This document shows positions 15,097 through 63,946 of a DNA stretch of 64,000 nucleotides, in pieces. Each line of letters starts with the position of its first letter. Position 1 is the first letter of the stretch. Source of the stretch: Malacoraja senta (Eukaryota). Made by a program: the position numbers and the translations under genes. The DNA is taken from the NCBI GenBank assembly GCA_038087875.1, contig CM075977.1, positions 356,128,001 to 356,192,000 of the forward strand, in the 5' to 3' direction. Below the pieces are notes generated by a model. That model saw only the letters and a list, made by a program, of their open reading frames with translations. It did no database searches and had not been told where the DNA came from.

Positions 15097-16587
15097 GAAT
15101 TGTAGACCAGCCTGACATCAGTGGTGGGGAAGATGTTGGAGTCAATTATTAAAGATGTAATAGCGGTATATTGGGGCTCATGTTGTCGACCACTCCGTGG
15201 TGAGCCCTGTCAACTGACCTCAGTCAGGCGAATGACAACAAGCAGAGACAGCAGCAGCGCAGCAGCTTGGCGCCAACCCGGAGGATGCGCCCTTTTTAGG
15301 GCGGGCACCTACGGATGTCGAACTGGATGGCATCATCCTGCTGCAGACTTCTGCTGCCTCAAACGCAAGAAGAAGAAGCAGCGCATTTGGCTAGCAGTAA
15401 CAGGATCGGTCCGAGTCAGCATGGATTTACAAATGGGAAATCTTGCTTGACTAACCTTCTGGAATTTTTTGAGGATGTAACAAGAAAAATGGATAAGGGA
15501 GAGCCAGTGGTTGTAGTGTATCTGGACTTTCAGAAAGCCTTTGATAAGGTCCCGCACAGAAGATTATTGGACAAAATTAGAGTACATGGTATTGGGGGTA
15601 GGGTATTGACATGGATAGAAAATTGGTTGGCAGACAGGAAACAAAGAATAGGGATTAACGGGTCCATTTCAGAATGGCAGGCAGTGACTAGTGGGGTGCC
15701 GCAAGGCTCGGTGTTGGGACTACAGCTATTTACAATATATATTAATGATTTAGATAAAGGAATTAAAAGTAACATTAGCAAATCTGCAGACGACACAAAG
15801 CTGGGTGGCAGTGTGACTTGGAAAATTTGGGTGAGTGGGCAGATGCATGGCAGATGCAGTATAATGTGGATAAATGTGAGGTTATCCACTTTGGTGGCAA
15901 GAACAAAAAGGCAGATTATTATCTGTATGCTGTCAGAATAGGAAAAGGGGAAGTGCAACGAGACCTGGGTGTCATTGACATCAGTCTCTGAAAGTAAGCA
16001 TGCAGGTACAGCAGGCATTGAATAAAGCTAATGGCATGCTGGCCTTCATAACGAGTGGATTTGAGTATAGGAGCAAAGAGATCCTTTTGCAGTTGTACAG
16101 GGTCCTGATGAGACCACACCTGTAGTATTTTGTGCAGTTATGGTCTCCTAATTTGAGCAAGGACATTCTTGCTATTGAGGGAGTGCAGCAGAGGTTCACG
16201 AGGTTAATTCCCAGGATGGAGGGATTGTCATATGATGAAAGAATGGAACCACTGGGCTTGTATTCACAGGAATTTTGAAGAATGAGAGGGGATTTTATAG
16301 AAACATATAAAATGAATGAAGGTTTGGACAAGCTAAATTCAGGAAACAAGTTCCCGATGTTGGTCACCCAGAGAGTTGTGAATTTGCGGAATTCTCTGCC
16401 TCATAAGGCAGTGAAGGCCGATTCACTAGATGCATTCAAAAGAGAGTTAGATAGAGCTCTTAGGGCTAGCGGAATTGAGGGATATGGGGAGAAGGCGGGA
16501 ACTGGGTACTGATTGTGGATGATCAGCCATGATCACATTGAATGGCGGTGCTGGCTAGAAGGGCTGAATGGCCTACACCTGCATCTA
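15097..16587 (+). mobile_element. CR1 ORF2 3' half with internal deletions, interrupted at 15167-15376
   Basis: [18 protein letters not shown]...[12 protein letters not shown]...[10 protein letters not shown]...ADDTKLGG. Confidence 0.95.
15167..15376 (+). mobile_element. Short GC-rich retro-insertion with (AAG)4 tail inside CR1
   Basis: Interrupts the CR1 sequence gtaatagc/agcgcatttgg and ends aagaagaagaag, an RTE-type tail. Confidence 0.55.
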
Positions 16588-27419: not shown

Positions 27420-27643
27420 GTGTAGGAAAGAACTGCAGATGCGGGTTTAAATCGAAGGTAGACACAAAATGCTGGAGTAACTCAGCGGGTGAGGCAGCAT
27501 CTCTGGAGAGAAGGAATGGGCGACGTTTTGGGTCGAGACCCTTCTTCAGTCTTAAGAATGGTCTCTACCCAAAACGTCGCTCATTCCTTCTCTCCAAAGA
27601 TGCTGACTCACCGGCTGAGTAACTCCAGCATTTAGTGTCTACC
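27420..27643. repeat. Penelope-derived palindrome with two divergent hammerhead-like cores
   Basis: Arms ~27457-27549 and ~27551-27643 are reverse complements; core ctgaagaagggtctcgaccc(g/a)aaacgtc. Confidence 0.8.
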
Positions 27644-34325: not shown

Positions 34326-35072
34326 ATGCAGGAAGAGAGTGTTCCCGCAGAATCGGCCAGCACGAGGCAGGGCTCACCGGTCTTCAAACTCCCAGCCTTT
34401 TGGCCTGATCAACCTCAGGTGTGGTTCGCCCATGTTGAGGCACAGTTCCACCTTCATCGCATCGTGACAGACGACACAATGTATTTCCATGTGGTGGGGG
34501 CTTTGCCGCAGGACTGTGCCTCGAGGTTGTTGCCTTACATCAGGGACCCGCCGTCAATCGGCAAATACGAAGGGCTGAAGGCCCTGTTGTTCCACGCTTA
34601 CGGTCTCAGCTGCAGAGACAGGGCAGCGAGGCTGCTGCACATGGACTGTGTTGGCGATCGACGGCCATCCACCATCATGGCGAAGATGTTAGCCCTGATG
34701 GACGGGCACCGCCCATGCTTACTTTTCGAACAGGTGTTCCTGGAGCAGATGCCTGACGAAGTCCAGCTAATGCTCGCCGGAGCCAATTTCAGCGACCCGC
34801 GACAACTCGCGGAGAGAGCTGATGAACTGTGGGCGCACAGGCGGCGGGACGTGTTTGCTTTCGCCCGCCCCCTGGTCACACAACGGGTGCAGCCGAACCG
34901 ACATCGAGGAGAGGAGGAAGAAGCCCAGCCCAGCGCCGAAGAAGAATCGCCGCGGCCAGTGGTCTACAGACAACGCAGATGGTGCTACTACCACCAATGA
35001 TACGGACCCGAAGCCCGAAGATGCTGGAGCCCCTGTTCGTTTCCGGGAAACTCCCCGGCCTATCGTCCATAG
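34326..35072 (+). pseudogene. gag: Gypsy gag with a premature stop in the zinc knuckle
   Basis: KLPAFWPDQPQVWFAHVEAQF...WCYYHQ*YGPEARRCWSPC; natural stop just after the slippery site. Confidence 0.85.
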
Positions 35073-36112
35073 AGGCGAATGCGATTGGCACAAACGAACG
35101 CCTCTATGTCCGCGATCGCCATTCCGGCCACCGTTTCCTGGTGGACTCCGGTGCCCATGCCAGTATCCTGCCTCCGAGCGCCCGAGATATTCACGTCGGT
35201 AAGGTAGGACCCGTCCTCTCGGCTGTTAACGGGAGCGATATTCGCACGTACGGTACGCGGACCGCGAACCTAAATTTCGACTCCCGCCAGTACAGGTGGA
35301 AGTTTATCGTTGCTGACGTCGCCCAACCGATCCTGGGGGCCGATTTCTTGTGCGCATTCTCCTTGTTAGTCGATGTGCGAGGTGGAAGCATGGTCCCTGT
35401 GACGGACTCATGCCCTGCCAAGCTGCGCAATCCGTCAACACCCCTACAGCAATTCGACGAGGTAGCTGAGATCCAGCAACCTTTTTCAGCCCTGCTCGCC
35501 GACTTCCCTGGGTTGCTCATGCCCCGGTTCGACGGAGACGTGCACCGTCATGGCGTGGTCCACCACATTCTCACCGAGGGCCCGCCCCATAAACTGCGCA
35601 TCGCACGAGACGAGTTCCAGCTTATGGAGGACCTAGGGATCGTCCGGCGGTCGGATAGCCCCTGGGCTTCCCCGTTACACACGGTGCCCAAAGCGTCCGG
35701 GGGTTGGAGACCTTGCGGTGATTACAGGCGATTGAACGCGGTAACCACAGCCGATCGGTACCCAGTCCCGAACATCCAGGATTTCTCGGCCCATCTGGAA
35801 GGTGCGACCTTCTTCTCGAAGGTTGACCTTATTCGCGGGTATAATCAAATCCCGGTTCACCCCGACGATGTCCCCAAAACGGCCACCATTCCCCCTTTCG
35901 GCCTCTTTGAATGGCTCAGAATGCCTTTTGGTTTGAAGAACGCTGCTCAGGCGTTCCAAAGGCTAATGGATCAGGTCGGTCGGGTTTGCCGTTCATTTTC
36001 ATCTACCTGGATGATATCCTGGTAGCCAGCAGCTCACAGGCGGAGCATGTCAGGCACCTCCGCCTTCTCTTCGAACAGCTGCGCAAACACGGGTTGGTGA
36101 TCAACCCTTCGA
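35045..36112 (+). pseudogene. pol: Gypsy pol (protease plus RT), truncated
   Basis: FLVDSGA, ILGADFL, SPWASP, WRPCGDYRRLN, RMPFGLKNA, frameshifted YLDD; ends at GLVINPS. Confidence 0.92.
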
Positions 36113-47565: not shown

Positions 47566-48678
47566 CCATATATGTTTTCTATTGGACATTGGCTTTCAGG
47601 TGCCCATCGATCTGGAATTTTTTCTCCCATGAGGCATAATGGAGTTTCCATTGCAAGAATACATTGTGTGATTAATATGTCCCTGGATATCTTCAAATCA
47701 CTCCCTGTTTTTTTCTTGTTGCAAAGTTGCAAATGTTGCACACATTGACAACAGATAAAAATGACCTGCTACCCAATCTCCTATTTTTTTGCGCAAGATC
47801 AGGAACTGCAGATCTGCTCTGTGCATGACCTCTTTTAAAACTGGTTCTTATTGTGCATTGCATCATAAAGATAACCCTGCTTTCTACTAGTAAATGGCAC
47901 TTTCACAATTGGACATCCTTGTTGTTACAAAAATTGCAGTTTTCTAATATTCTTAGAGATATAATACAAAGCCTCTATTTTTGCATCTCAACCTTTACAA
48001 CTGTCGGGTAACATTTTGCATTCAAAATGTGGGTGTGCGTACAAGATAATGAGGAAAAATGCTGAAAATTGAAATAACAGAAAAAATAATAACCACACAA
48101 TAAATCTAACACCATCAAAAATAATACAAGGTGGAATATTAGTGCTTTGGGGCATAAGCTTGATAACAATCCCCTTCTCTGCTAAATGGGTGCACAGATC
48201 ACAATGCATAATTAATTCACGCCTGTTAGTAGCGATGTTACAAAACTCTACCATCAGTGGTGCTCCAGATCTGCCCACTGCCTGTGAGTGCGATTACGGA
48301 GGCTTTGGGGGGGGGGGGGGGGGGGGTTAAATGCAGGCTTGCATTGGTTGTCGGAGAGGGATTTGCTCGGACTGCTAGCTGATGAAGAAAATTTGTTCTG
48401 AGCTTCCGTTCCCGTTTTTTTAATTTAAAAGTTGCTGGTCGATTGCATCGCTGGATTGAAGTTAAATGCGCCTTCTAACACCTACAACATCACGGATCGC
48501 AAGTGCAGGACAAAACAAAAGGTATGTCATTTATTTAACATATCTTGCTTTTTGGTGTGGTTTCATTTTAATATGATGATGCGAAAGATATTATTTAGGC
48601 CCCGATACGATATCGGCCGTGTCTTGCCTGCCGATAGGGGCTTAAATCATGGCAGCAGCCACATTCCAATCTATAACG

Positions 48679-50401
48679 ATCCAGAAACATCCACTCTCAA
48701 GATAATCAAATTCATTATTTTTATGCACAATCAAGTCTTAAGAACATCTAAAGCATCTATATTTTGTGTTATTGTCCATCCATGATCAATATTTTCATAC
48801 TAAATATCCACAGTCGGAGTGGATAAGAATGGAAAAAGAGGAGTGTTTCCCGTACGATATAGGAACGATCTTGTTCTCACCAATAAAATTGAATAGTATA
48901 ATATATAAGAAGAACCCAATTATTCACAATACAATAAGAATTTGTAAAACAAATAAAATTATCCTTGAAATTAAATAATCTATCAGTATTAACCCCAATT
49001 CTGAATAATCCTGCATTCAAACCATCTCTTATCGACAAAACATATAAACAATGGGATAGATTGGGGATTGGGAAAGTAGGAGATATGTATGAACTGGGCA
49101 AATTGTTATCATTTCAACAATTAAAATTAAAATTTAAACTGAATGATAATCAATATTTTAAATATATACAGATATGTGACTTTATGAAGAAATATATACA
49201 TAGATCTCAAACTATATTTTTAGACCCTTTAGAAGAAGCAATGAATATTAAGGCTGATTCAGGAAAACTAATATCATATTTTTATAATAGTATATTAAAT
49301 AGAGAATTACCCTCAACAGAGGCACTAAGAGAAGATTGGGAACATGAACTAATGATAAAGATCCCGAAAGATAGATGGGAAAAGTATCTGATGAATACAC
49401 ATAATTGTTCCATTAATGCAAGACATAATTTAATTCAATTTAAATTATTACATAGACTATATTATTCAAAAACGAGGTTGAATAAATTTTACCCAAATGT
49501 CTCTCCCAGATGCGATAAATGTTTGTTTCAAAATGCCAATATAACACATTCATTTGTAGGATGTACAAAGTTGAATACATTTTGGAGCGATATATTTGAT
49601 ATATTTACAAAGCTCTTCAAGTCAAGAATAGAACCTAATATGGAATGGATTATATTTGGAATAATATTAGAAGATAGCAATTTAAACAAAGACCAAAAAG
49701 TATTCTTTAATTATGGGTTAATAATTGGAAAGAAATTGATACTTAAATTTTGGAAAAATACAGCTATACCAACTATTAAAATGTGGATTAGGAATATGAC
49801 GGACATAGCACACCTAGAAGAAATGAGACTCCGTCTAATAGATAAATATGACCAATTCTTAAGGAGTTGGTCACCTTTCATCGACTTTTTGGAATCATGT
49901 GATGCAGCAGTACCGTAAAGATTACTGATTTCAGGTCAGGTCGTGGATAGATTTACATCTCCAAACAAAGATTTGAAAATTTCTTTTTTAAGGGTCTTTT
50001 TCTACTATTTCTACTTTCTATTTTTTCTTTTCTTATATACACACTTCACGTTTTTCTATTTTCTACTATTTATTTTTCCTCTTTCTTTTCTCTATTTTTT
50101 TTTCTTTCTTTTATTTTTTATTTTTTACCTTCTTTTCAAAAACATAAAACTAGAGGTTGTACATAGAATGCATTACGTTATGACATAGTTGGCACCTAAA
50201 ATTAGGTGCCACTGTATTGTTTTGTATTGTATTAACTTCTAATAAAATAAACAAAACAACAACAAAATATCCACAGTACAGTTTTAGTCAGGTATACATG
50301 GATAGACAATTACACAAAATATAGATAATTTAGATGTTCTTATGACATGATTGTGCAAAAAATAATGATTTTGATTATCTTGAGAGTGAATGTTTCTGGA
50401 T
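48679..50401. repeat. ~105-bp inverted repeat arms (48679-48784 and 50297-50401) flanking the L1
   Basis: atccagaaacatccactctcaagataatcaaa... versus ...tttgattatcttgagagtgaatgtttctggat. Confidence 0.85.
48815..50264 (+). mobile_element. 5'-truncated L1 with an open ORF2 C-terminus
   Basis: IQFKLLHRLYY...RCDKC...THSFVGC zinc motif...WSPFIDFL; 13-bp TSD aaatatccacagt at 48802-48814 and 50265-50277. Confidence 0.95.
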
Positions 50402-50857
50402 TTTGAACAAATGTCTGTGTAAAACGACCCTTGCCAACTGCAGTTTATAAACCAACAGAGTAAAATTAATGAGAATTAAACATTCAATTCCTTCCATTTG
50501 GCATAGAAATTCATGACAAAGTGAGATTGAAAAATCATGTTATATTGTGAATTCTTGTGTGAATGGGATCAATTTGTTATTTGGATACTTTGGCTATCAA
50601 AAAAAATATTTTTAGCCTTTTCTTAAGAATGGGATAGATGTTTAGATCTAGTAATTGAATTTAGATGAATTTAATTGATTTGATGATACTGATGAATATG
50701 ATTTTTTTGTTGGGTATTTACTATTTGTTTAAACGTTTAACTTGTGTTAGGCATTTTGTTGAACAAAAACATTTCAACTTTTTTTTTCTAAAACTGCAAA
50801 TAATAACTTGTTTCTGTTAATGCTGCTCCGTGTTTTTTTTCTTTACATTTTGAACAG

Positions 50858-53785
50858 ATGTCTCCGAAGAAGAAATGCAAAATTGTCAATCCAAATGCTC
50901 AGACTGGCATAGCTAGAGCTCACCTTGAAGTGGATTTTTCCATCATGCCCGAGTCTAAGAGGGATCTTAAAAAGGGACACATCTTGTACTTGCATACCTC
51001 GTTTGCAAAAAATCTGTCTGAAACTGAGAGACGGTTGAGTTCACATTTCTCTTTGTCGGATGCAGAAGGCTATTCATTTGGTACTGTTAACTCAAGGATG
51101 AGGACTCTCGGGAACCGGACTTTGCTTAAGTTTAAAAAACTCAGCAATCCCAAGGAACTTGGAACAGTTATGAAAATTTGTGATGAAACTTTTAAACTTC
51201 CAGAAGGCAGTCAACACATTTCTTTAGATGACATTCCACCGCCTGGTGCTCAAGATCCTGAATCCTTGACATCAGCCGAAAGTCAAGTGCCCATATTTCA
51301 AGACACGGAGGACATGGGCAATGACAGTCATAGTCTGCATCCTCCACTGAATCTGGCAACGCCAGCGACAGCTGCTGCCTCTTCTGAACCAATGCCATCG
51401 ACATCTAGTTGTTTCAACAAGATGTAGCAGAGAACTTCTAAGTCTTACACCAAGGAAACAGAAAATGAAAAGACTAAACTTTCTGTCCACATCCAAGGTC
51501 GCTCTTACACTAAAGTATCGCACAAAGATCAGTGAACATAGGGCACAGTTGAAAACTCCCAAATGTGTAGTTAATCAAGCCTTAAAGAGAAAGCAAAACC
51601 AAATAGATTTAAAGGACAGAAAGATTCAGGAACTCACAACCAAATTACATGGGAATACTTTGGCACGAGAGCTTGCTGAAACCAAGGCAGAGTTTTTGAG
51701 ACTTAAAAAAGCACACAGACAATGGCTCAAGTTTCGTGGCAGTAAGAAAGAGGAAAACTGTTTCAATTCACCAGTACAGAAAAGTTCATGGAAAAACTAA
51801 AGGACTGGGAAGAGGATGTGAGACGCCACGAATTTGACAATCTTGTCCAAAGAAACAATCGAAACTCTGGAGGCTGCCAGTATTGTCAAGTCAAAGGTGG
51901 ACCAGAAGACTTACTCCTCAACAACAAGGATGCATTTGTTTGACTGTATTGTAAACAAAACTCCCACAGCAAACATTCCAATCCTGATAAGCCAGTTCTA
52001 CAAGCGGAGTTGACTTAATCTGGATTGTGTTCCTCGACGCAGTGCAGTTGAAGTTCTGGCCCGAGAATTGGGAGCTATTGCTGAGTTGCAGACAGCAGAG
52101 ATGATCCTAGCAACAAAGGATTTGACTGTTGGTTTTGATGCAACCACCCAAGAAGAGACCCATATTAACAGTGTACTCTTCACCACCACAAATGAATGTC
52201 TTTCTGCAGCAGTCGATGAATTGGCTGGTGGGACTGCTGAGGACTATGCGCAACATATATTTGCGATACTGTTGACAATGTGTAAAACGTACACGTATTT
52301 CAATGAGCAAGCGGATAGCCAAGACACCAGGCAAAAGATAATAGACAACATTACAAATACACTGAGTGACAGGTGTGCAGCTAATCATGCTGCTATTAGG
52401 ATTGTGAACAGTGAGTGGGGTAAATCTTTGAATGAGCTCCACTGCCACTTGCATCCTCTTGACTCCATCGCAACATCAGCTCGCTCAGCCCTCAAAATGC
52501 ACAAACAATCCAGAGGAAAATTCTTGTTTGGGAAAGACTGTCTAGCAGTAAATGTCATACTGCAGATGAACAAACTTCGGTACAAGAATGGAAAAGGGGA
52601 CCCAAAAGGATTTGTTGCAATTTTGGATGAAAGGAACATCCCCAGAGTTGTCCTCCCATGGTACCGTGGCAACAGATTACATATACTTTTCCATATTAGT
52701 GGCAAGCTCATAGAACATTATGATGACTTTGTTACCCTGCTGAATAGCGGAACATCCTGTGGGGGGTTGAGAAGCGCCATCCTCTATGACTTCACCCAGG
52801 CTGAAGCAAAAGTAGAACTTCAGATATTAGGCTTACTTGGCAAATATCTGACTGGGCCTTGGATGAAGCGCTTCTACACTTCAAGCCAGAATCAGATCAA
52901 CCACGCTGATGGCATCAAAGTGGTTAAAGGGGTGATTGCTGCTCTAAAGGAAGCCACAGAAAATCCAGAGAACTTGATATTGGCAAGGGAAGATTTCTTC
53001 AGTGAGGAGACGCATCTTGATGCCACTTTGACAAAACTTCGGGAGCTACCAGCACATCCACAGTTCAAAGATGAGGAGCTGTCTTCAAGCTGTCATCACT
53101 GTATTGGAAAGGCAGTATAGTAAATACTTTGAATTTGATGTAACTGAGAAACTGAAGGAGGAGACTGCACCAGCAAGATCACACATTGATGTGGAGGAGA
53201 TAATGGGGATGTTTAGCTCATCGAAACAGAAATCTCCCAATGCCACCATGTGTTATTTGTCATGTAGAATGCGGACCTGCAAGAATAGAACAGTCAACTT
53301 CCTTGATAATCTCGAGGAGCAACGTAGAGAGGAGGTGCTCTGTAAGGCAGTGACATGTGGGAGAGTGCAGAGGAACAGACGGAAGTAAAAACAGAAGGAA
53401 TTGGGAGCAGAAATCATCAAGGGACAGAAAGACAAGGAGCATGCTCGGGACACGAAAGAGAGGAAAAGACTAGGAAAAAAAATTGAAAGAGACCGATTTA
53501 AACAGCATTCACAGAGATTATCCGAATTTGGACTACTCCAAATGTGATGATCTACAGGACATTCTTAATGGGAAAGTAGTGGGCAGAAAGGCATGTCATG
53601 TGTGGTTTGAAGAGCAAAAACTTGTAGTTTACAATGCCAAAATTGAAAAGTTGAGGAAAAACAAGGTGTACAGAGTTGCATATTGGTTGCAATCTGAGGA
53701 GTATGATGATGCTACTGATTATGATATGCCAATGTACCAGCTAGCAGCTGATCTTCTCCATAAAGACTTGCTAGAAATTTGCTAG
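50858..53785 (+). pseudogene. hAT-like DDE transposase, frameshifted (roughly 950 codons)
   Basis: MSPKKK start after a tttgaacAG acceptor; GFDATT (D1), LSDR (D2), CHLH (CxxH), YRGNRLHILF, DVEEIMGMFS (E); spread over five or more ORF pieces. Confidence 0.8.
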
Positions 53786-55339
53786 AAATTTGTAATTTTG
53801 CTAGTAATTGTAATTTCTTTACCTATCTGTTACGGACTTACAGCATAAAATACAATAATATTAAAGTTCTCATCTTGAGAATATCACATTTTTTAATTTT
53901 CAAGGCAGTCTCGGTGTTTATTACTATTTCCGTCACAACGGTCAATTTTGTAATTAGCTAGAATTAGGTAACTAACTAATTATATGCTTTAATTTCAGGT
54001 CATCCAAGTAATGTTTCATGTTTGTTTTAGAATGCTTTAATCTATAATAACTGAAAATTCCATTCAGTTCTCTTAATTTTTAAGAAAGTTATGGGCTTTT
54101 ATGTCAATTGACTGTCCTCGATCACAGCTTTTGTGTTAAGTTAATGGAAAAGCAATAGGGAACAAGATGTTAATTTCCGAGTATGAAAATGACCATAACT
54201 TTGTTAATACTGAAGATATGAAAGTGAATTAGGTATCAAATTAAAGTTATTTTATGCTTTATTTGATGGGATAAATTACAGGCTTGATTTTTAAAATCTC
54301 AAAATTTTGTAACATTCCTACTGTTAGTTGCAATATCAGCAACACACCAGCTTCAGCAGACGTCAACACTGTGAGTACCTCACATCTGATAACATTCATC
54401 TCCTCAGCTTAGGATAGCCCTAAAGAAAAAATGCCTAAGAATCTGAAAGGCATATCATGGAAAACAGTGGTCTCCAAAGCTTTCTGATGCCGCAATAAAA
54501 GCCATAGAAGAGACACTGCAGTAAGTAATGGGGCAACAATTTTAAAATCTGTGTTATACGTGGAATAGCTCAGGTTCAGGAATAGCAGCGGCTCCATGGA
54601 GCTCCAGTTCCAAAACCATTCTCCAAAGTCTTCTGCAATCTACTCAATGAAAGTCAGCAACCTTTCACCAGGCAAGCTGCAACCACAGGAGCAGCATCAA
54701 ACAGGAGAATGTTTAGATAAACACACAGATAAGGAGCAGTGTACAGGAAATCATTCGGGTATATAGTTGACGCCTATTCATTTAAGTTATAGATATGCTT
54801 TTAAATGTCAGTTTTATGCTGATGAAACCTGAGCTGGTCAGGAAATGGTGATGTGTAGAACTGTTGTTAAGTGGGGAATGCGGGTTGTGGCAATCGATGG
54901 TGAACTCAGATGAGTTACACATGTTCACGCAGGCAGTAAAGGGCTGTCTAATTCTCCTCCTGGCTTCTTCTTTCTCCTCCATGCTTGTGATTCTAAGTTG
55001 CTTATCATAGTTGGCAATAAAGATGGCTTCCAGTTGAGTTGTTTGCTCTCTGCTCATGTTTATATCATGCTAAAAAATGTGCTGTCCAGCATGAGTGACA
55101 ACAATAACATGAAAAAACAATATTTTGAATCTCAAGGATAGCTGCAAAACCCTAAAAAAACAGAGCCAATGATTCCAATTGCTCACAGTGTGTCAACATT
55201 GTCAAATAAACTATCACCATTCATCCATAAGTATTGTCATTTAAAGATGTAGCAGTGAATGGGCTCACGGCAAAGACTGTCATGTGGTCATGCATATGCT
55301 TAGAGCTCAGAATCGTCAAAACTTCCTCAACTGACATGT

Positions 55340-61747: not shown

Positions 61748-62623
61748 GGGCCGGCAGCTTTGTGCTCATTCACCTTGCTCAGTGCATCTTGTACAGCAGA
61801 GGTGGAGAGACTGAGGGGTTGTTCGTTCGGGGGTGGAGCAACTTTGATGGCTGGAGTTTTGTTGTCCCGGTCGAAGCGAGCATAGAAGTGGTTTAGCTCG
61901 TCAGGAAGGGAGGCGTTATCTGGGGGTGGTGTTAACTTTATGGTAATCGGCAATGGATTTGATTCCTTGCCACATGCGCCTAGGGTCGGAGTTGTTTTGG
62001 AAATGCTCCTCGATCCGCCGTTTGTGATTGTTTAGCATTCCTAATTCCCCTTTTCAGATTGGCCCTGGATGAGCTGTATCCCTCAGCGTCGCCAGATCTG
62101 AAAGAGGCATCGCGAGCCTTCAGCAGGAGTCTGACCTCCCTGCTCATCCACGGCTTCTGGTTAGGGAAGGTCTTTATCTCTTTGTGGGTAGTGACGTTGT
62201 CAGTGCAGAATTTTATATAGTCCAAGACGGTTGAGGTGTATGAGTCGATGTCCACTTGGGAGTCAAGGGTGGCCTGGGTGGCAAACAGACTCCAGTCTGT
62301 TTGCTGAAACTGTTCCTGTAAACCAGAGACAGCCCCCTCAGGCCAAACCTTCACTGTCTTCACGGTAGGTTTCACACGTCTGATCCGAGGTGTGTATTTG
62401 GGGAGCAGGAACAGAGAGAGGTGGTCAGACTGTCCCAGGTGGGGGAGGGGGAGGGCTTTGTAGGCCTCAGTAATATTAGTATATACTAAGTCCAGAGTAT
62501 TGTTTCCTCTGGTTGGACAGGAGACATGCTGGTGAAATCTGGGGAGTACAGTTTTAAGGTTGGAGTGGTTAAAATCACCCGCAACAATAAAAGCCCCCTC
62601 TGGGTGTGCAGTTAGTTGTTTGC
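61748..62623 (-). mobile_element. Inverted 5' segment of a Rex1/Babar LINE (APE endonuclease C-terminus and linker)
   Basis: [14 protein letters not shown]...CPTRGNNTLD...HLGQSDH...NQKPWMSREVR...ELNHFYARFD...KAAGP. Confidence 0.9.
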
Positions 62624-63946
62624 ATCCCCGGGCGGGTGCTCAGGGCATGTGCTGGACAACTATCCATGGTCTTCACTGACATTTTCAATCTGTCACTGGC
62701 CCAGGGTGTCGTCCCCACTTGCCTCAAGACATCAACCACTGTGCCAGTGCCCAAACAATCAGCTACAGGGTGTCTCAACGACTTCCGCCCAGTGGCACTC
62801 ACCCCTGTCATTGCAAAGTGCTTTGAGCGGCTGATCCTGGCTCACCTCAAAGCCAGCCTCCCCCCCACACTGGACCCCCATCAGTTTGCCTACCGGACCA
62901 ACAGGTCTACAGAGGACGCCATATCGGCGGCCCTACACTCTGCCCTGACCCACCTGGACAGCAATAATACCTACATCAGGCTGCTGTTTATTGATTTCAG
63001 CTCCGCCTTTAACACTGCCATCCCCGCTAGCTTGATCACCAAACTCAGCGGACTTGGCATCTCCACCTCCCTCTGCAATTGGACACTGGATTTCCTCACC
63101 AACAGACCACAGTCTGTTAGGGTCAACAACCTCACCTCCTCCACTATAACACTGAACACTGGCGTGCCACAGGGCTGTGTGCTCAGCCCTCTCCTCTACT
63201 CCCTCTTCACCCATGACTGCATCCCCAAGAATGGCTCCAACGCCATCATTAAATTTGCCGACGATACCATGGTGGTAGGACTGATCAGTGACAACGACGA
63301 GTCAGCCTACAGGGAGGAGGTCCAGCACCTGGCAGTCTGGTGTGCCAACAATAACCTCGTCCTCAACTCCATGAAGACAAAGGAAATTATTGTTGACTTC
63401 AGGAAGAACAGAGGGGGCAGACATACCCCCATACATATAAACGGGACTGAGGTGGAGCGCGTCTCCAACTACAAATTCCTCGGGGTACACATCTCGGAGG
63501 ATTTGTCCTGGTCCCTCAATACCTCCAAACTGATCAAGAAGGCACAGCAGCGCCTTTACTTCCTGAGGAGGCTCAAGAAAGCTCACCTGTCCCCCCAGAT
63601 CCTGACCAACTTTTACCGCTGTACCATCAAAAGCATCCTGACCACCTGCATCACGGTATGGTACAGTAGTTGCACGGTAGCTGACAGGAAGGCACTACAA
63701 CGGGTGGTGAAGACCTCTCAGTACATCATCGGTGCCCCGCTCCCTGCAATGGATGCCCTCCACCGAAAACGGGGTCTGAGACGGGCCGGGAAGATCATCA
63801 AGGACCCCTCCCACCCTAACCATGGACTGTTTGCCCTCCTCCCATCAGGGAGGCGGTACAGAAGCCTCAGGTCTCGTACAAGTAGGATGAGGAACAGCTT
63901 CTTCAACAACACTATCACATTGCTGAACTCGGAGTCCCGCCGATAG
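62622..63946 (+). CDS. Rex1/Babar reverse transcriptase, uninterrupted frame (5'-truncated by the inversion)
   Basis: [45 protein letters not shown]; 3'UTR runs off the window. Confidence 0.9.

Follow-up and report, generated by a model that had tools for sequence, protein, structure and literature searches.

A full-length but decayed transposon copy in a skate genome probably belongs to a large aquatic-animal family with a hAT-like fold and 7-bp target-site duplications

The 64,000 nucleotides of Malacoraja senta DNA analysed here (the window) contain an element that raises two questions: what kind of DNA transposon combines hAT-like features with a 7-bp target-site duplication, and how such an element came to lie in a vertebrate genome. 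A first-pass annotation had described it as a complete, autonomous-type, hAT-like DNA transposon and as a candidate for horizontal transfer. The former description is supported by the present analysis, and we are confident that it represents a full-length copy, now dead, of an autonomous DDE cut-and-paste transposon from a large family of aquatic animals with a hAT-like fold and 7-bp duplications; the latter description has fared less well, as discussed below.

The element spans positions 48230-54320 (6,091 bp) and terminates in 16-nt inverted repeats that start with TAG and finish with CTA. The left repeat (48230-48245, forward strand) reads TAGCGATGTTACAAAA and the right repeat (54305-54320, reverse strand) reads TAGGAATGTTACAAAA as its reverse complement, the two agreeing at 14 of 16 positions. 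The exact pattern TAGNNATGTTACAAAA occurs at only two sites in the 64 kb, both strands counted, and these are the two element ends. Directly outside them stand two copies of CTGTTAG, at 48223-48229 and 54321-54327. A scan in which duplications were sought first and inverted ends second, over a 3.8 kb by 2.7 kb area surrounding the gene, returned this CTGTTAG pair as its sole result at k=7 and found no pair at k=8 or k=9 in the same area. Both the inverted repeats and the perfect 7-bp duplication reported by the first-pass annotation are thus confirmed. Its further remark that 8 bp does not fit needs a small correction; counting the initial T of the left end as flanking sequence makes CTGTTAGT at 48223-48230 equal to 54321-54328, and because this longer sequence repeats too, the single copy is ambiguous between 7 and 8 bp.

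It might therefore be argued that we are dealing with an ordinary hAT element with the 8-bp duplication CTGTTAGT, 8 bp being usual for hAT elements (PMC12730594), and that the 7 bp are an artefact of treating the initial T as part of the inverted repeat. We regard this as highly improbable. Such a reading would leave the element with unequal ends, AGCG... on one side and TAGG... on the other, whereas seven relatives from four other lineages (L001; L005 and L013; L009, L011 and L012; and L010, from the sea urchin S. purpuratus) start with TAGG at both ends, conform to TAGG[T/G]A[T/C]GT and are each flanked by an exact 7-bp duplication. Taking these seven together with the window copy, an 8-bp duplication is impossible for five of the eight elements, and the extra matching base seen in the other three is at chance level (the expectation being about 1 in 4 per side). 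As the relatives' ends are all TAG-first, the 7-bp reading was chosen for the window copy as well. The 7-bp duplication characterises the family as a whole, being found in 8/8 elements with both canonical ends. Among the remaining loci, L002, L003 and L004, copies of one family, have damaged or rearranged ends; no recognisable ends were found for L006 (a Scleropages gene model) or for L007 and L008 (two identical 4,942-bp copies), which consequently yield no duplication length. We note that the hAT terminal-repeat consensus is 5'-YARNG; the first four bases of the family's ends fit it, and the fifth is usually T, not G.

The eight target sites have sequences unrelated to one another, and this bears on whether the element could be of the Dada type. 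Dada elements make duplications of 6-7 bp and inhabit fishes, molluscs and annelids, and their DDE enzyme, again from aquatic animal hosts, is distantly related to those of hAT, P, MuDR and Kolobok (PMC3706591). They have no terminal inverted repeats, however, and the window element does; they insert inside U6, U1 or tRNA genes, whereas no Rfam family or tRNA was found at the target in the window. With eight unrelated target sites in addition, we give a Dada identity a negligible probability.

Between the ends lies an intronless transposase pseudogene of about 975 codons (50858-53785, forward strand). Its pieces, in frames 2, 0, 1 and 2, are colinear with homologues of 960-978 aa and align with them end to end, at 62% identity in the case of P0125. 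The gene is interrupted by three in-frame stops (51798, 51819 and 52011) and three frameshifts (about 51406-51411, 53066-53071 and 53454-53489), and so this copy cannot make transposase. To call it reconstructable to a nearly intact open reading frame, as had been done, is therefore an overstatement in view of six disabling lesions and the insertion of a LINE. All searches used either the unmended transposase pieces or intact natural homologues.

The LINE in question is a nested, 5'-truncated L1-like element with an A-rich tail (48815-50264, forward strand), situated in the 5' non-coding region and flanked by its own duplication of 10-13 bp, (AAA)TATCCACAGT, at 48802-48814 and 50265-50277. An open reading frame within it (48965-49918) has a weak zf-RVT match (E 9e-5) that falls under the Pfam cut-off. 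As a separate observation, a search with a LINE reverse-transcriptase reading frame had teleost sequences at 70-77% as its best matches, a vertebrate-type result. The nested LINE splits a palindrome, either native to the transposon or a nested foldback element, of which the left arm (48679-48784, 106 nt) is 91.5% complementary to the right arm (50297-50401). No other match to this palindrome was found within the window, and comparison in the window ruled out that it is a copy of the hammerhead-bearing palindromic repeat at 27420-27643.

All the catalytic motifs that the first-pass annotation had named are present, together with a conserved tryptophan. They lie in a region (51912-53278, forward strand) which, from a structural model of a homologue and from alignment A3, comprises a predicted RNase H-like core and helical insertion domain: an aspartate at 52137-52139 (GFDATT), a second at 52368-52370 (SDRCAANH), CxxH at 52443-52454, tryptophan at 52860-52862 (TGPWM) and EE at 53194-53199. 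The corresponding residues D42, D118, C143, H146, W285 and E401 are invariant or at least 90% conserved among the 30 diverse members of A3. Upstream of the catalytic region, a conserved N-terminal domain (50858-51206, forward strand; alignment A2) has a basic start followed by helices, five of them in the model of P0125 residues 1-118 (pLDDT 80), for which neither the PDB nor the Atlas offered a significant structural match (Foldseek E at least 2.9; best VIA wide Z 4.1). A2 contains no Cys/His zinc-finger pattern, with just one His and one Cys conserved, and neither the pieces of the window gene nor 8 full-length homologues gave a zf-BED match in Pfam. With the helical N-terminal model, these results agree with the earlier view that a BED finger is absent. 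A basic, probably coiled-coil region follows on the forward strand (51411-51910), positioned by the domain layout of 62 full-length homologues and having weak Pfam matches to coiled-coil families only. Downstream of the catalytic region, a small beta-rich C-terminal domain (53507-53782, forward strand) is predicted from strands at residues 532-595 of the P0006 model; it is possibly Tudor-like, a lead that comes from Atlas feature scores of 0.77-0.78 to Tudor and Spin/Ssty clusters, where the trust level is 0.9.

Is this enzyme, then, a hAT transposase? By sequence alone no kinship with hAT is visible. Pfam, NCBIfam and PDB sequence searches with the transposase pieces gave no match; Dimer_Tnp_hAT and related Pfam models matched neither the window pieces nor 8 full-length homologues; 30 members searched with a cut-off as loose as E <= 10 showed no Pfam hAT, BED or dimerisation domain; and the family profile (A1) retrieved no Hermes chain and no transposase from the PDB sequences. 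The structural comparison speaks more clearly. The model of P0006, a homologue 52% identical to the window's broken protein (which was not itself modelled), has a pLDDT of 93, and its residues 1-437 match Hermes 136-609 with Z 19.7 over 341 aligned residues (rmsd 3.8). The second-best fold class among the matches listed, retroviral integrase cores, reaches Z 9.8 at most, about half the Hermes score. This comparison reaches superfamilies with solved structures; Kolobok, MuDR, Dada and KDZ are without one. The P element superfamily was considered and rejected: Pfam found no THAP domain in full-length homologues, the Foldseek match to P element transposase is weaker than that to Hermes (E 2.7e-4 against 2.2e-6), and P element transposase is not among the best 50 VIA matches (lowest Z 9.0). 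The model thus shows the structural hallmark of hAT, an RNase H-like DDE core with an all-helical insertion between the second D and the E, and the motifs D, D, C/DxxH, W and E follow one another as they do in hAT; recognition by sequence models, an 8-bp duplication and an N-terminal BED zinc finger are absent. We take the family's D, D, W and E to be equivalent to Hermes D180, D248, W319 and E572, a correspondence drawn from the fold match and from what is known of Hermes, not from a residue-level alignment.

Alternatively, the family might constitute a separate hAT-related superfamily, or a deep sister lineage, with only the fold in common with hAT. Typical hAT transposases are about 300 aa shorter than the family protein, and in addition to this greater length one may point to the missing Pfam or PDB sequence link to hAT, the absent BED finger, the 7-bp rather than 8-bp duplication, and the new N-terminal domain and the added coiled-coil and beta domains as hallmarks of its own. 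Nevertheless, the match to Hermes takes in the helical insertion domain and the C-terminal helices as well as the RNase H core; the TAG...CTA termini and the succession of motifs (D, D, CxxH, W, E) resemble those of hAT; and hAT is accepted to include groups whose duplications are 5, 6 or 7 bp long (PMC12730594). We therefore judge a separate superfamily unlikely and prefer a family of hAT-like fold.

The family is large. An exhaustive profile search returned 2,598 clusters (50% identity, E <= 0.001), 471 of them at E <= 1e-30, and the best 150 matches listed are all clear family members. Every host named in the sources is an aquatic animal, several vertebrates among them, and some assemblies carry identical intact proteins at 2-4 loci, which points to recent activity in those assemblies. 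By protein, the nearest relatives of the window copy are P0125, at the 62% given above, and P0002 (73% over part); the nearest named one is the sea-urchin element, at 72% over 340 codons. The skate copy falls with the sea-urchin element and three others in a clade with an SH-aLRT of 99. Vertebrate sequences occupy at least six places in the tree, and a tree in which they are monophyletic is rejected (delta lnL 367, p-AU 1e-69); the family tree is strongly at odds with host phylogeny.

It is tempting to conclude from this clade and this scatter that the window copy stems from an aquatic invertebrate and crossed horizontally into the vertebrate lineage fairly recently, the more so as the last 300 nt of the element, a conserved 3' subterminal non-coding module (54021-54320, forward strand), show 76% identity with L010 of the sea urchin across 305 nt. 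We nonetheless consider a recent transfer improbable. Beyond the 72% protein identity, third codon positions of the two copies are 41% identical and four-fold sites 35%, against 26% expected; synonymous sites are saturated and the NG86 dS is undefined, so that the divergence from the sea-urchin copy stands at the limit of what such sites record. Moreover, blocks of the 3' module recur in three more families, and a 14-nt inverted repeat within it (inside 54071-54100 and 54187-54216) is kept there with some two-sided changes; partial retention in far more distant families is a sign of constraint, not of youth. Finally, the patchy tree fits old parallel lineages with losses and old transfers equally well. 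For the window copy, therefore, the suggestion of a recent horizontal transfer is unsupported.

If the analogy with Hermes holds, a transposase of about 920-1030 aa would recognise TAGG[T/G]A[T/C]GT at the short ends, with the conserved 3' subterminal sequences as a probable second target. Excision would be carried out by a D, D, E active site of RNase H type, together with the CxxH motif and the conserved Trp, and the two 3' ends would be joined to target phosphates 7 nt apart, gap repair then giving the 7-bp duplication. The small helical N-terminal domain, which presumably binds DNA, and the basic, probably coiled-coil region behind it would take the place of the BED finger, and a small beta-rich domain would follow the catalytic part. 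As to the history of this copy, it appears to have inserted at CTGTTAG and later to have received the truncated L1-like LINE in its 5' region as well as three stops and three frameshifts; it could at best be mobilised by intact relatives. More tentatively, and with considerable doubt, we speculate that the family is a deep, formally undescribed hAT-like branch spread across aquatic Metazoa, possibly a superfamily of its own, with a fixed 7-nt stagger, ends bound by a new helical domain instead of BED, a possible Tudor-like chromatin-reading tail and a 3' module with a covarying inverted repeat, its host-discordant phylogeny reflecting repeated old transfers among marine animals.

Taken alone, this decayed transposon has no particular importance, and a single copy is insufficient to fix the ends and stagger of a family. 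Its value is as an independent two-ended example which, with seven elements of four other lineages, fixes the TAGG[T/G]A[T/C]GT ends and the 7-bp stagger. Because domain libraries miss the family, its genes are labelled "uncharacterized protein" in many animal genomes, and a family profile would improve the annotation of such hAT-shaped enzymes. An enzyme with the Hermes fold, a 7-nt stagger and no BED finger could help to reveal what determines the distance between the two strand-transfer sites, and how ends are recognised in the absence of a zinc finger.

Among known systems, Hermes and the other hAT elements (hobo, Ac, Tam3) share with the family the DDE core with its large helical insertion, the motif order and short terminal repeats that start with TAG. 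Their 8-bp duplication is close to, but not equal to, the family's 7 bp, and the family differs further in having no BED zinc finger and no recognised Pfam hAT domain, and in its protein, some 920-1030 aa long, which starts with a helical domain, continues with a long basic segment that is probably a coiled coil, and carries a beta domain at its C-terminus. The first-pass annotation had favoured hATw. The Repbase/RepeatMasker labels hATw, hATm and hATx are used for Hydra, Caligus, molluscs and amphioxus, and the first three of these carry the family too, a likeness of hosts and not of compared sequences; in the literature found, hATw is a RepeatMasker class label only, with no duplication length stated. 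That some Repbase hAT entries are annotated "7-bp TSD" is implied by Bao et al. 2015 (PMC4455052). The hAT7 elements of rust fungi are likewise classed as hAT and make 7-bp duplications (Kojima 2025, PMC12730594), but they are fungal and cluster by sequence with Ac/Tam3-type transposases, whereas the present family is animal and unseen by the Pfam hAT models. On these grounds membership in hAT7 is unlikely, and the 7-bp stagger probably arose independently in the two. As described, hAT5 and hAT6 are animal hAT lineages whose duplications are also shorter than 8 bp, at 5 or 6 (PMC12730594), where the family described here has 7.

The element spans 6,091 bp (48230-54320). Its left end (TAGCGATGTTACAAAA) agrees with the reverse complement of its right end (TAGGAATGTTACAAAA) at 14 of 16 bases, and CTGTTAG abuts both ends, at 48223-48229 and 54321-54327. 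An end scan in which identical flanking k-mers were sought first, and the adjoining inverted repeat scored second, returned the CTGTTAG pair alone at k=7 and no pair at k=8 or k=9. Across the whole window TAGNNATGTTACAAAA has exact matches at the two element ends only, and this unique match together with the sole k=7 pair puts the inverted ends and abutting duplication far beyond chance. The 16-bp terminal inverted repeats and 7-bp duplication of the first-pass annotation are thereby borne out. Its further statement that 8 bp does not fit holds only in part: the relatives speak for 7 bp, but CTGTTAGT is likewise repeated when the initial T of the left end is assigned to the flank, so that the window copy by itself gives no decision between the two lengths.

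Relatives were found by word searches, with a 350-aa window ORF first and a 596-aa homologue second, which returned hundreds of animal proteins, uncharacterised and in many cases 920-1030 aa long; duplication length was read on those whose encoding contigs were retrievable. Both canonical ends are present in seven elements from four further lineages (L001; L005 and L013; L009, L011 and L012; and L010, from the sea urchin Strongylocentrotus purpuratus). All seven carry TAGG[T/G]A[T/C]GT at both termini and an exact 7-bp duplication (CACTATG, GTTCTTT, TACACTT, CAGAATA, CTATATA, TCAAATG and CAAGGTA), and an 8-bp reading is impossible in five of the eight elements formed by these and the window copy. 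The TAGG ends and exact duplications of the relatives thus assign the first T to the element and set the stagger of the family at 7; the comparison across copies that had been proposed as a check gave 7 bp in every related element with both ends. No duplication length could be taken from L002, L003 and L004, where the ends are damaged or rearranged. Recognisable ends were not found at L006, and L007:3757-8698 and L008:3757-8698 show neither inverted repeats nor a duplication where similarity stops. These last two copies, of 4,942 bp each, are 99.98% identical and have an intact 942-aa transposase gene. We note also that the related-family copy at L002:4004-8966, whose own left end is missing, lies inside another element; the inverted repeats of that outer element are perfect over 16 nt (CGGGCGGGTCTAAACG), and a repeat of 7-9 bp flanks it.

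The intronless transposase gene (50858-53785) runs colinear with homologues of 960-978 aa, among which P0125 gives the best match at 62% identity. To call it reconstructable to a nearly intact ORF, as the first reading did, overstates its condition: there are three in-frame stops (51798, 51819 and 52011) and three frameshifts (near 51406-51411, 53066-53071 and 53454-53489), and the window copy is dead. The catalytic motifs reported in it are still present in the broken gene, and searches used either its pieces separately or natural intact homologues.

Neither the window pieces nor full-length homologues gave a match in sequence searches of Pfam, NCBIfam and the PDB, and a sequence-level bridge from the family to hAT was not obtained. 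An AlphaFold model of P0006, a homologue with 52% identity to the window ORF (pLDDT 93, pTM 0.83), matched the Hermes hAT transposase with a Foldseek E of 2.2e-6 and a VIA-align Z of 19.7. The latter alignment covers 341 residues (model 1-437, Hermes 136-609) at an rmsd of 3.8. Retroviral integrase cores were not significant in Foldseek and reached a Z of at most 9.8, and the P element transposase gave an E of 2.7e-4 and fell outside the best 50 VIA-align matches. In 30 diverse members, residues D42, D118, C143, H146, W285 and E401 are fully or nearly invariant. Fold, motif order and TAG ends together point to a hAT-type enzyme, within a fold comparison that reaches only superfamilies with a solved structure, and there is good support for the first-pass reading of a hAT-like element that duplicates 7 bp.

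The layout drawn from 62 full-length proteins (P0125 numbering) comprises a moderately conserved N-terminal domain (1-115), a variable linker (116-175), a basic stretch, probably coiled-coil (176-335), the catalytic part (336-800), a long basic helix (800-870) and a small beta-rich domain (870-960; window 53507-53782). The N-terminal domain yielded no Cys/His pattern, and its model of five helices (pLDDT 80) found no significant structural neighbour, so that the first reading, which saw no obvious BED finger, is right on this point; the domain is putatively DNA-binding. For the beta domain, Tudor and Spin/Ssty clusters scored 0.77-0.78 in Atlas, below threshold, and serve as leads only.

The element ends in 300 non-coding nt (54021-54320) that are 76% identical to their sea-urchin counterpart (L010:8369-8672), as compared to 69% for the coding region. 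Three more distant families share blocks of this module (alignments A4 and A5); one such block is a 14-nt inverted repeat (within 54071-54100 and 54187-54216, about 125 nt apart), kept in four of five families and with pairing-preserving two-sided changes in one. The module further includes a TAGGTAT, which repeats the terminal motif. Such identity despite saturated synonymous sites points to selection on cis-acting sequence, and the module may contain candidate transposase-binding sites or a hairpin.

The 5' non-coding region holds a run of about 23 G at 48300-48326 and a 5'-truncated L1-like LINE (48815-50264) with an A-rich tail, an AATAAA signal, its own intact 10-13 bp duplication and an open 317-aa C-terminal ORF weakly matching zf-RVT. 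The LINE was inserted later than the transposon; without it the element measures about 4.6 kb, and intact relatives measure 4.5-5.7 kb. It sits between the 106-nt arms of a palindrome (48679-48784 and 50297-50401, 91.5% complementary) for which further matches were not found in the window, and which may belong to the transposon itself or be a foldback element nested in it. LINE fragments fill the window, which is repeat-rich throughout, with reverse-transcriptase ORFs at 62606-63943, 34829-36022 and 15315-15938; one LINE ORF has RVT_1 and ALKBH8_N, and its best named matches are teleosts (70-77%, vertebrate-type). No host gene was recognised among window ORFs of at least 130 aa, eight of which were scanned against Pfam.

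The hosts named by the sources are all aquatic animals: Hydra, molluscs, annelids, echinoderms, a sponge, a priapulid, a sea spider, the copepod Caligus, hagfish and several teleosts. A tree of 43 rows groups the window ORF with a sea-urchin protein and three further sequences (SH-aLRT 99), and in it vertebrate sequences fall at six places or more. A tree holding the vertebrates together was rejected (delta lnL 367, p-AU 1e-69), the group, though a natural one, having been picked after the tree was seen; a single vertical vertebrate lineage is rejected, which does not demonstrate transfer. Over 340 codons the window and sea-urchin genes share 72% protein identity, and their third codon positions are 41% identical. 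At four-fold sites in conserved residues identity is 35%, where composition predicts 26%. Synonymous sites are saturated for this pair (NG86 dS undefined), there is no sign of recent shared ancestry, and recent horizontal transfer, for which the element had been put forward as a candidate, is unsupported.

How does this family stand among known systems? The usual hAT duplication is 8 bp, with 5 bp in hAT5 and 6 bp in hAT6, and "hAT7" denotes fungal families with a 7-bp duplication that cluster with Ac/Tam3 (Kojima 2025, PMC12730594). Dada elements, of another DDE superfamily, resemble ours in duplicating 6-7 bp, but they are without inverted repeats and insert in small RNA genes (PMC3706591); the present element has inverted repeats and no Rfam or tRNA hit lies at its target, and we reject that identity. 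The window copy is one more member of its family, which curators have probably catalogued already but which is not described in standard domain libraries or in the literature found. Repbase held hAT entries with 7-bp duplications by 2015, as a command extracting 'hAT ... 7-bp TSD' entries attests (Bao et al. 2015, PMC4455052). The literature found uses 'hAT-hATw' for Hydra, Caligus, Lymnaea and amphioxus, each time as a RepeatMasker label alone; by its hosts, this range is compatible with the hATw label first given to the element.
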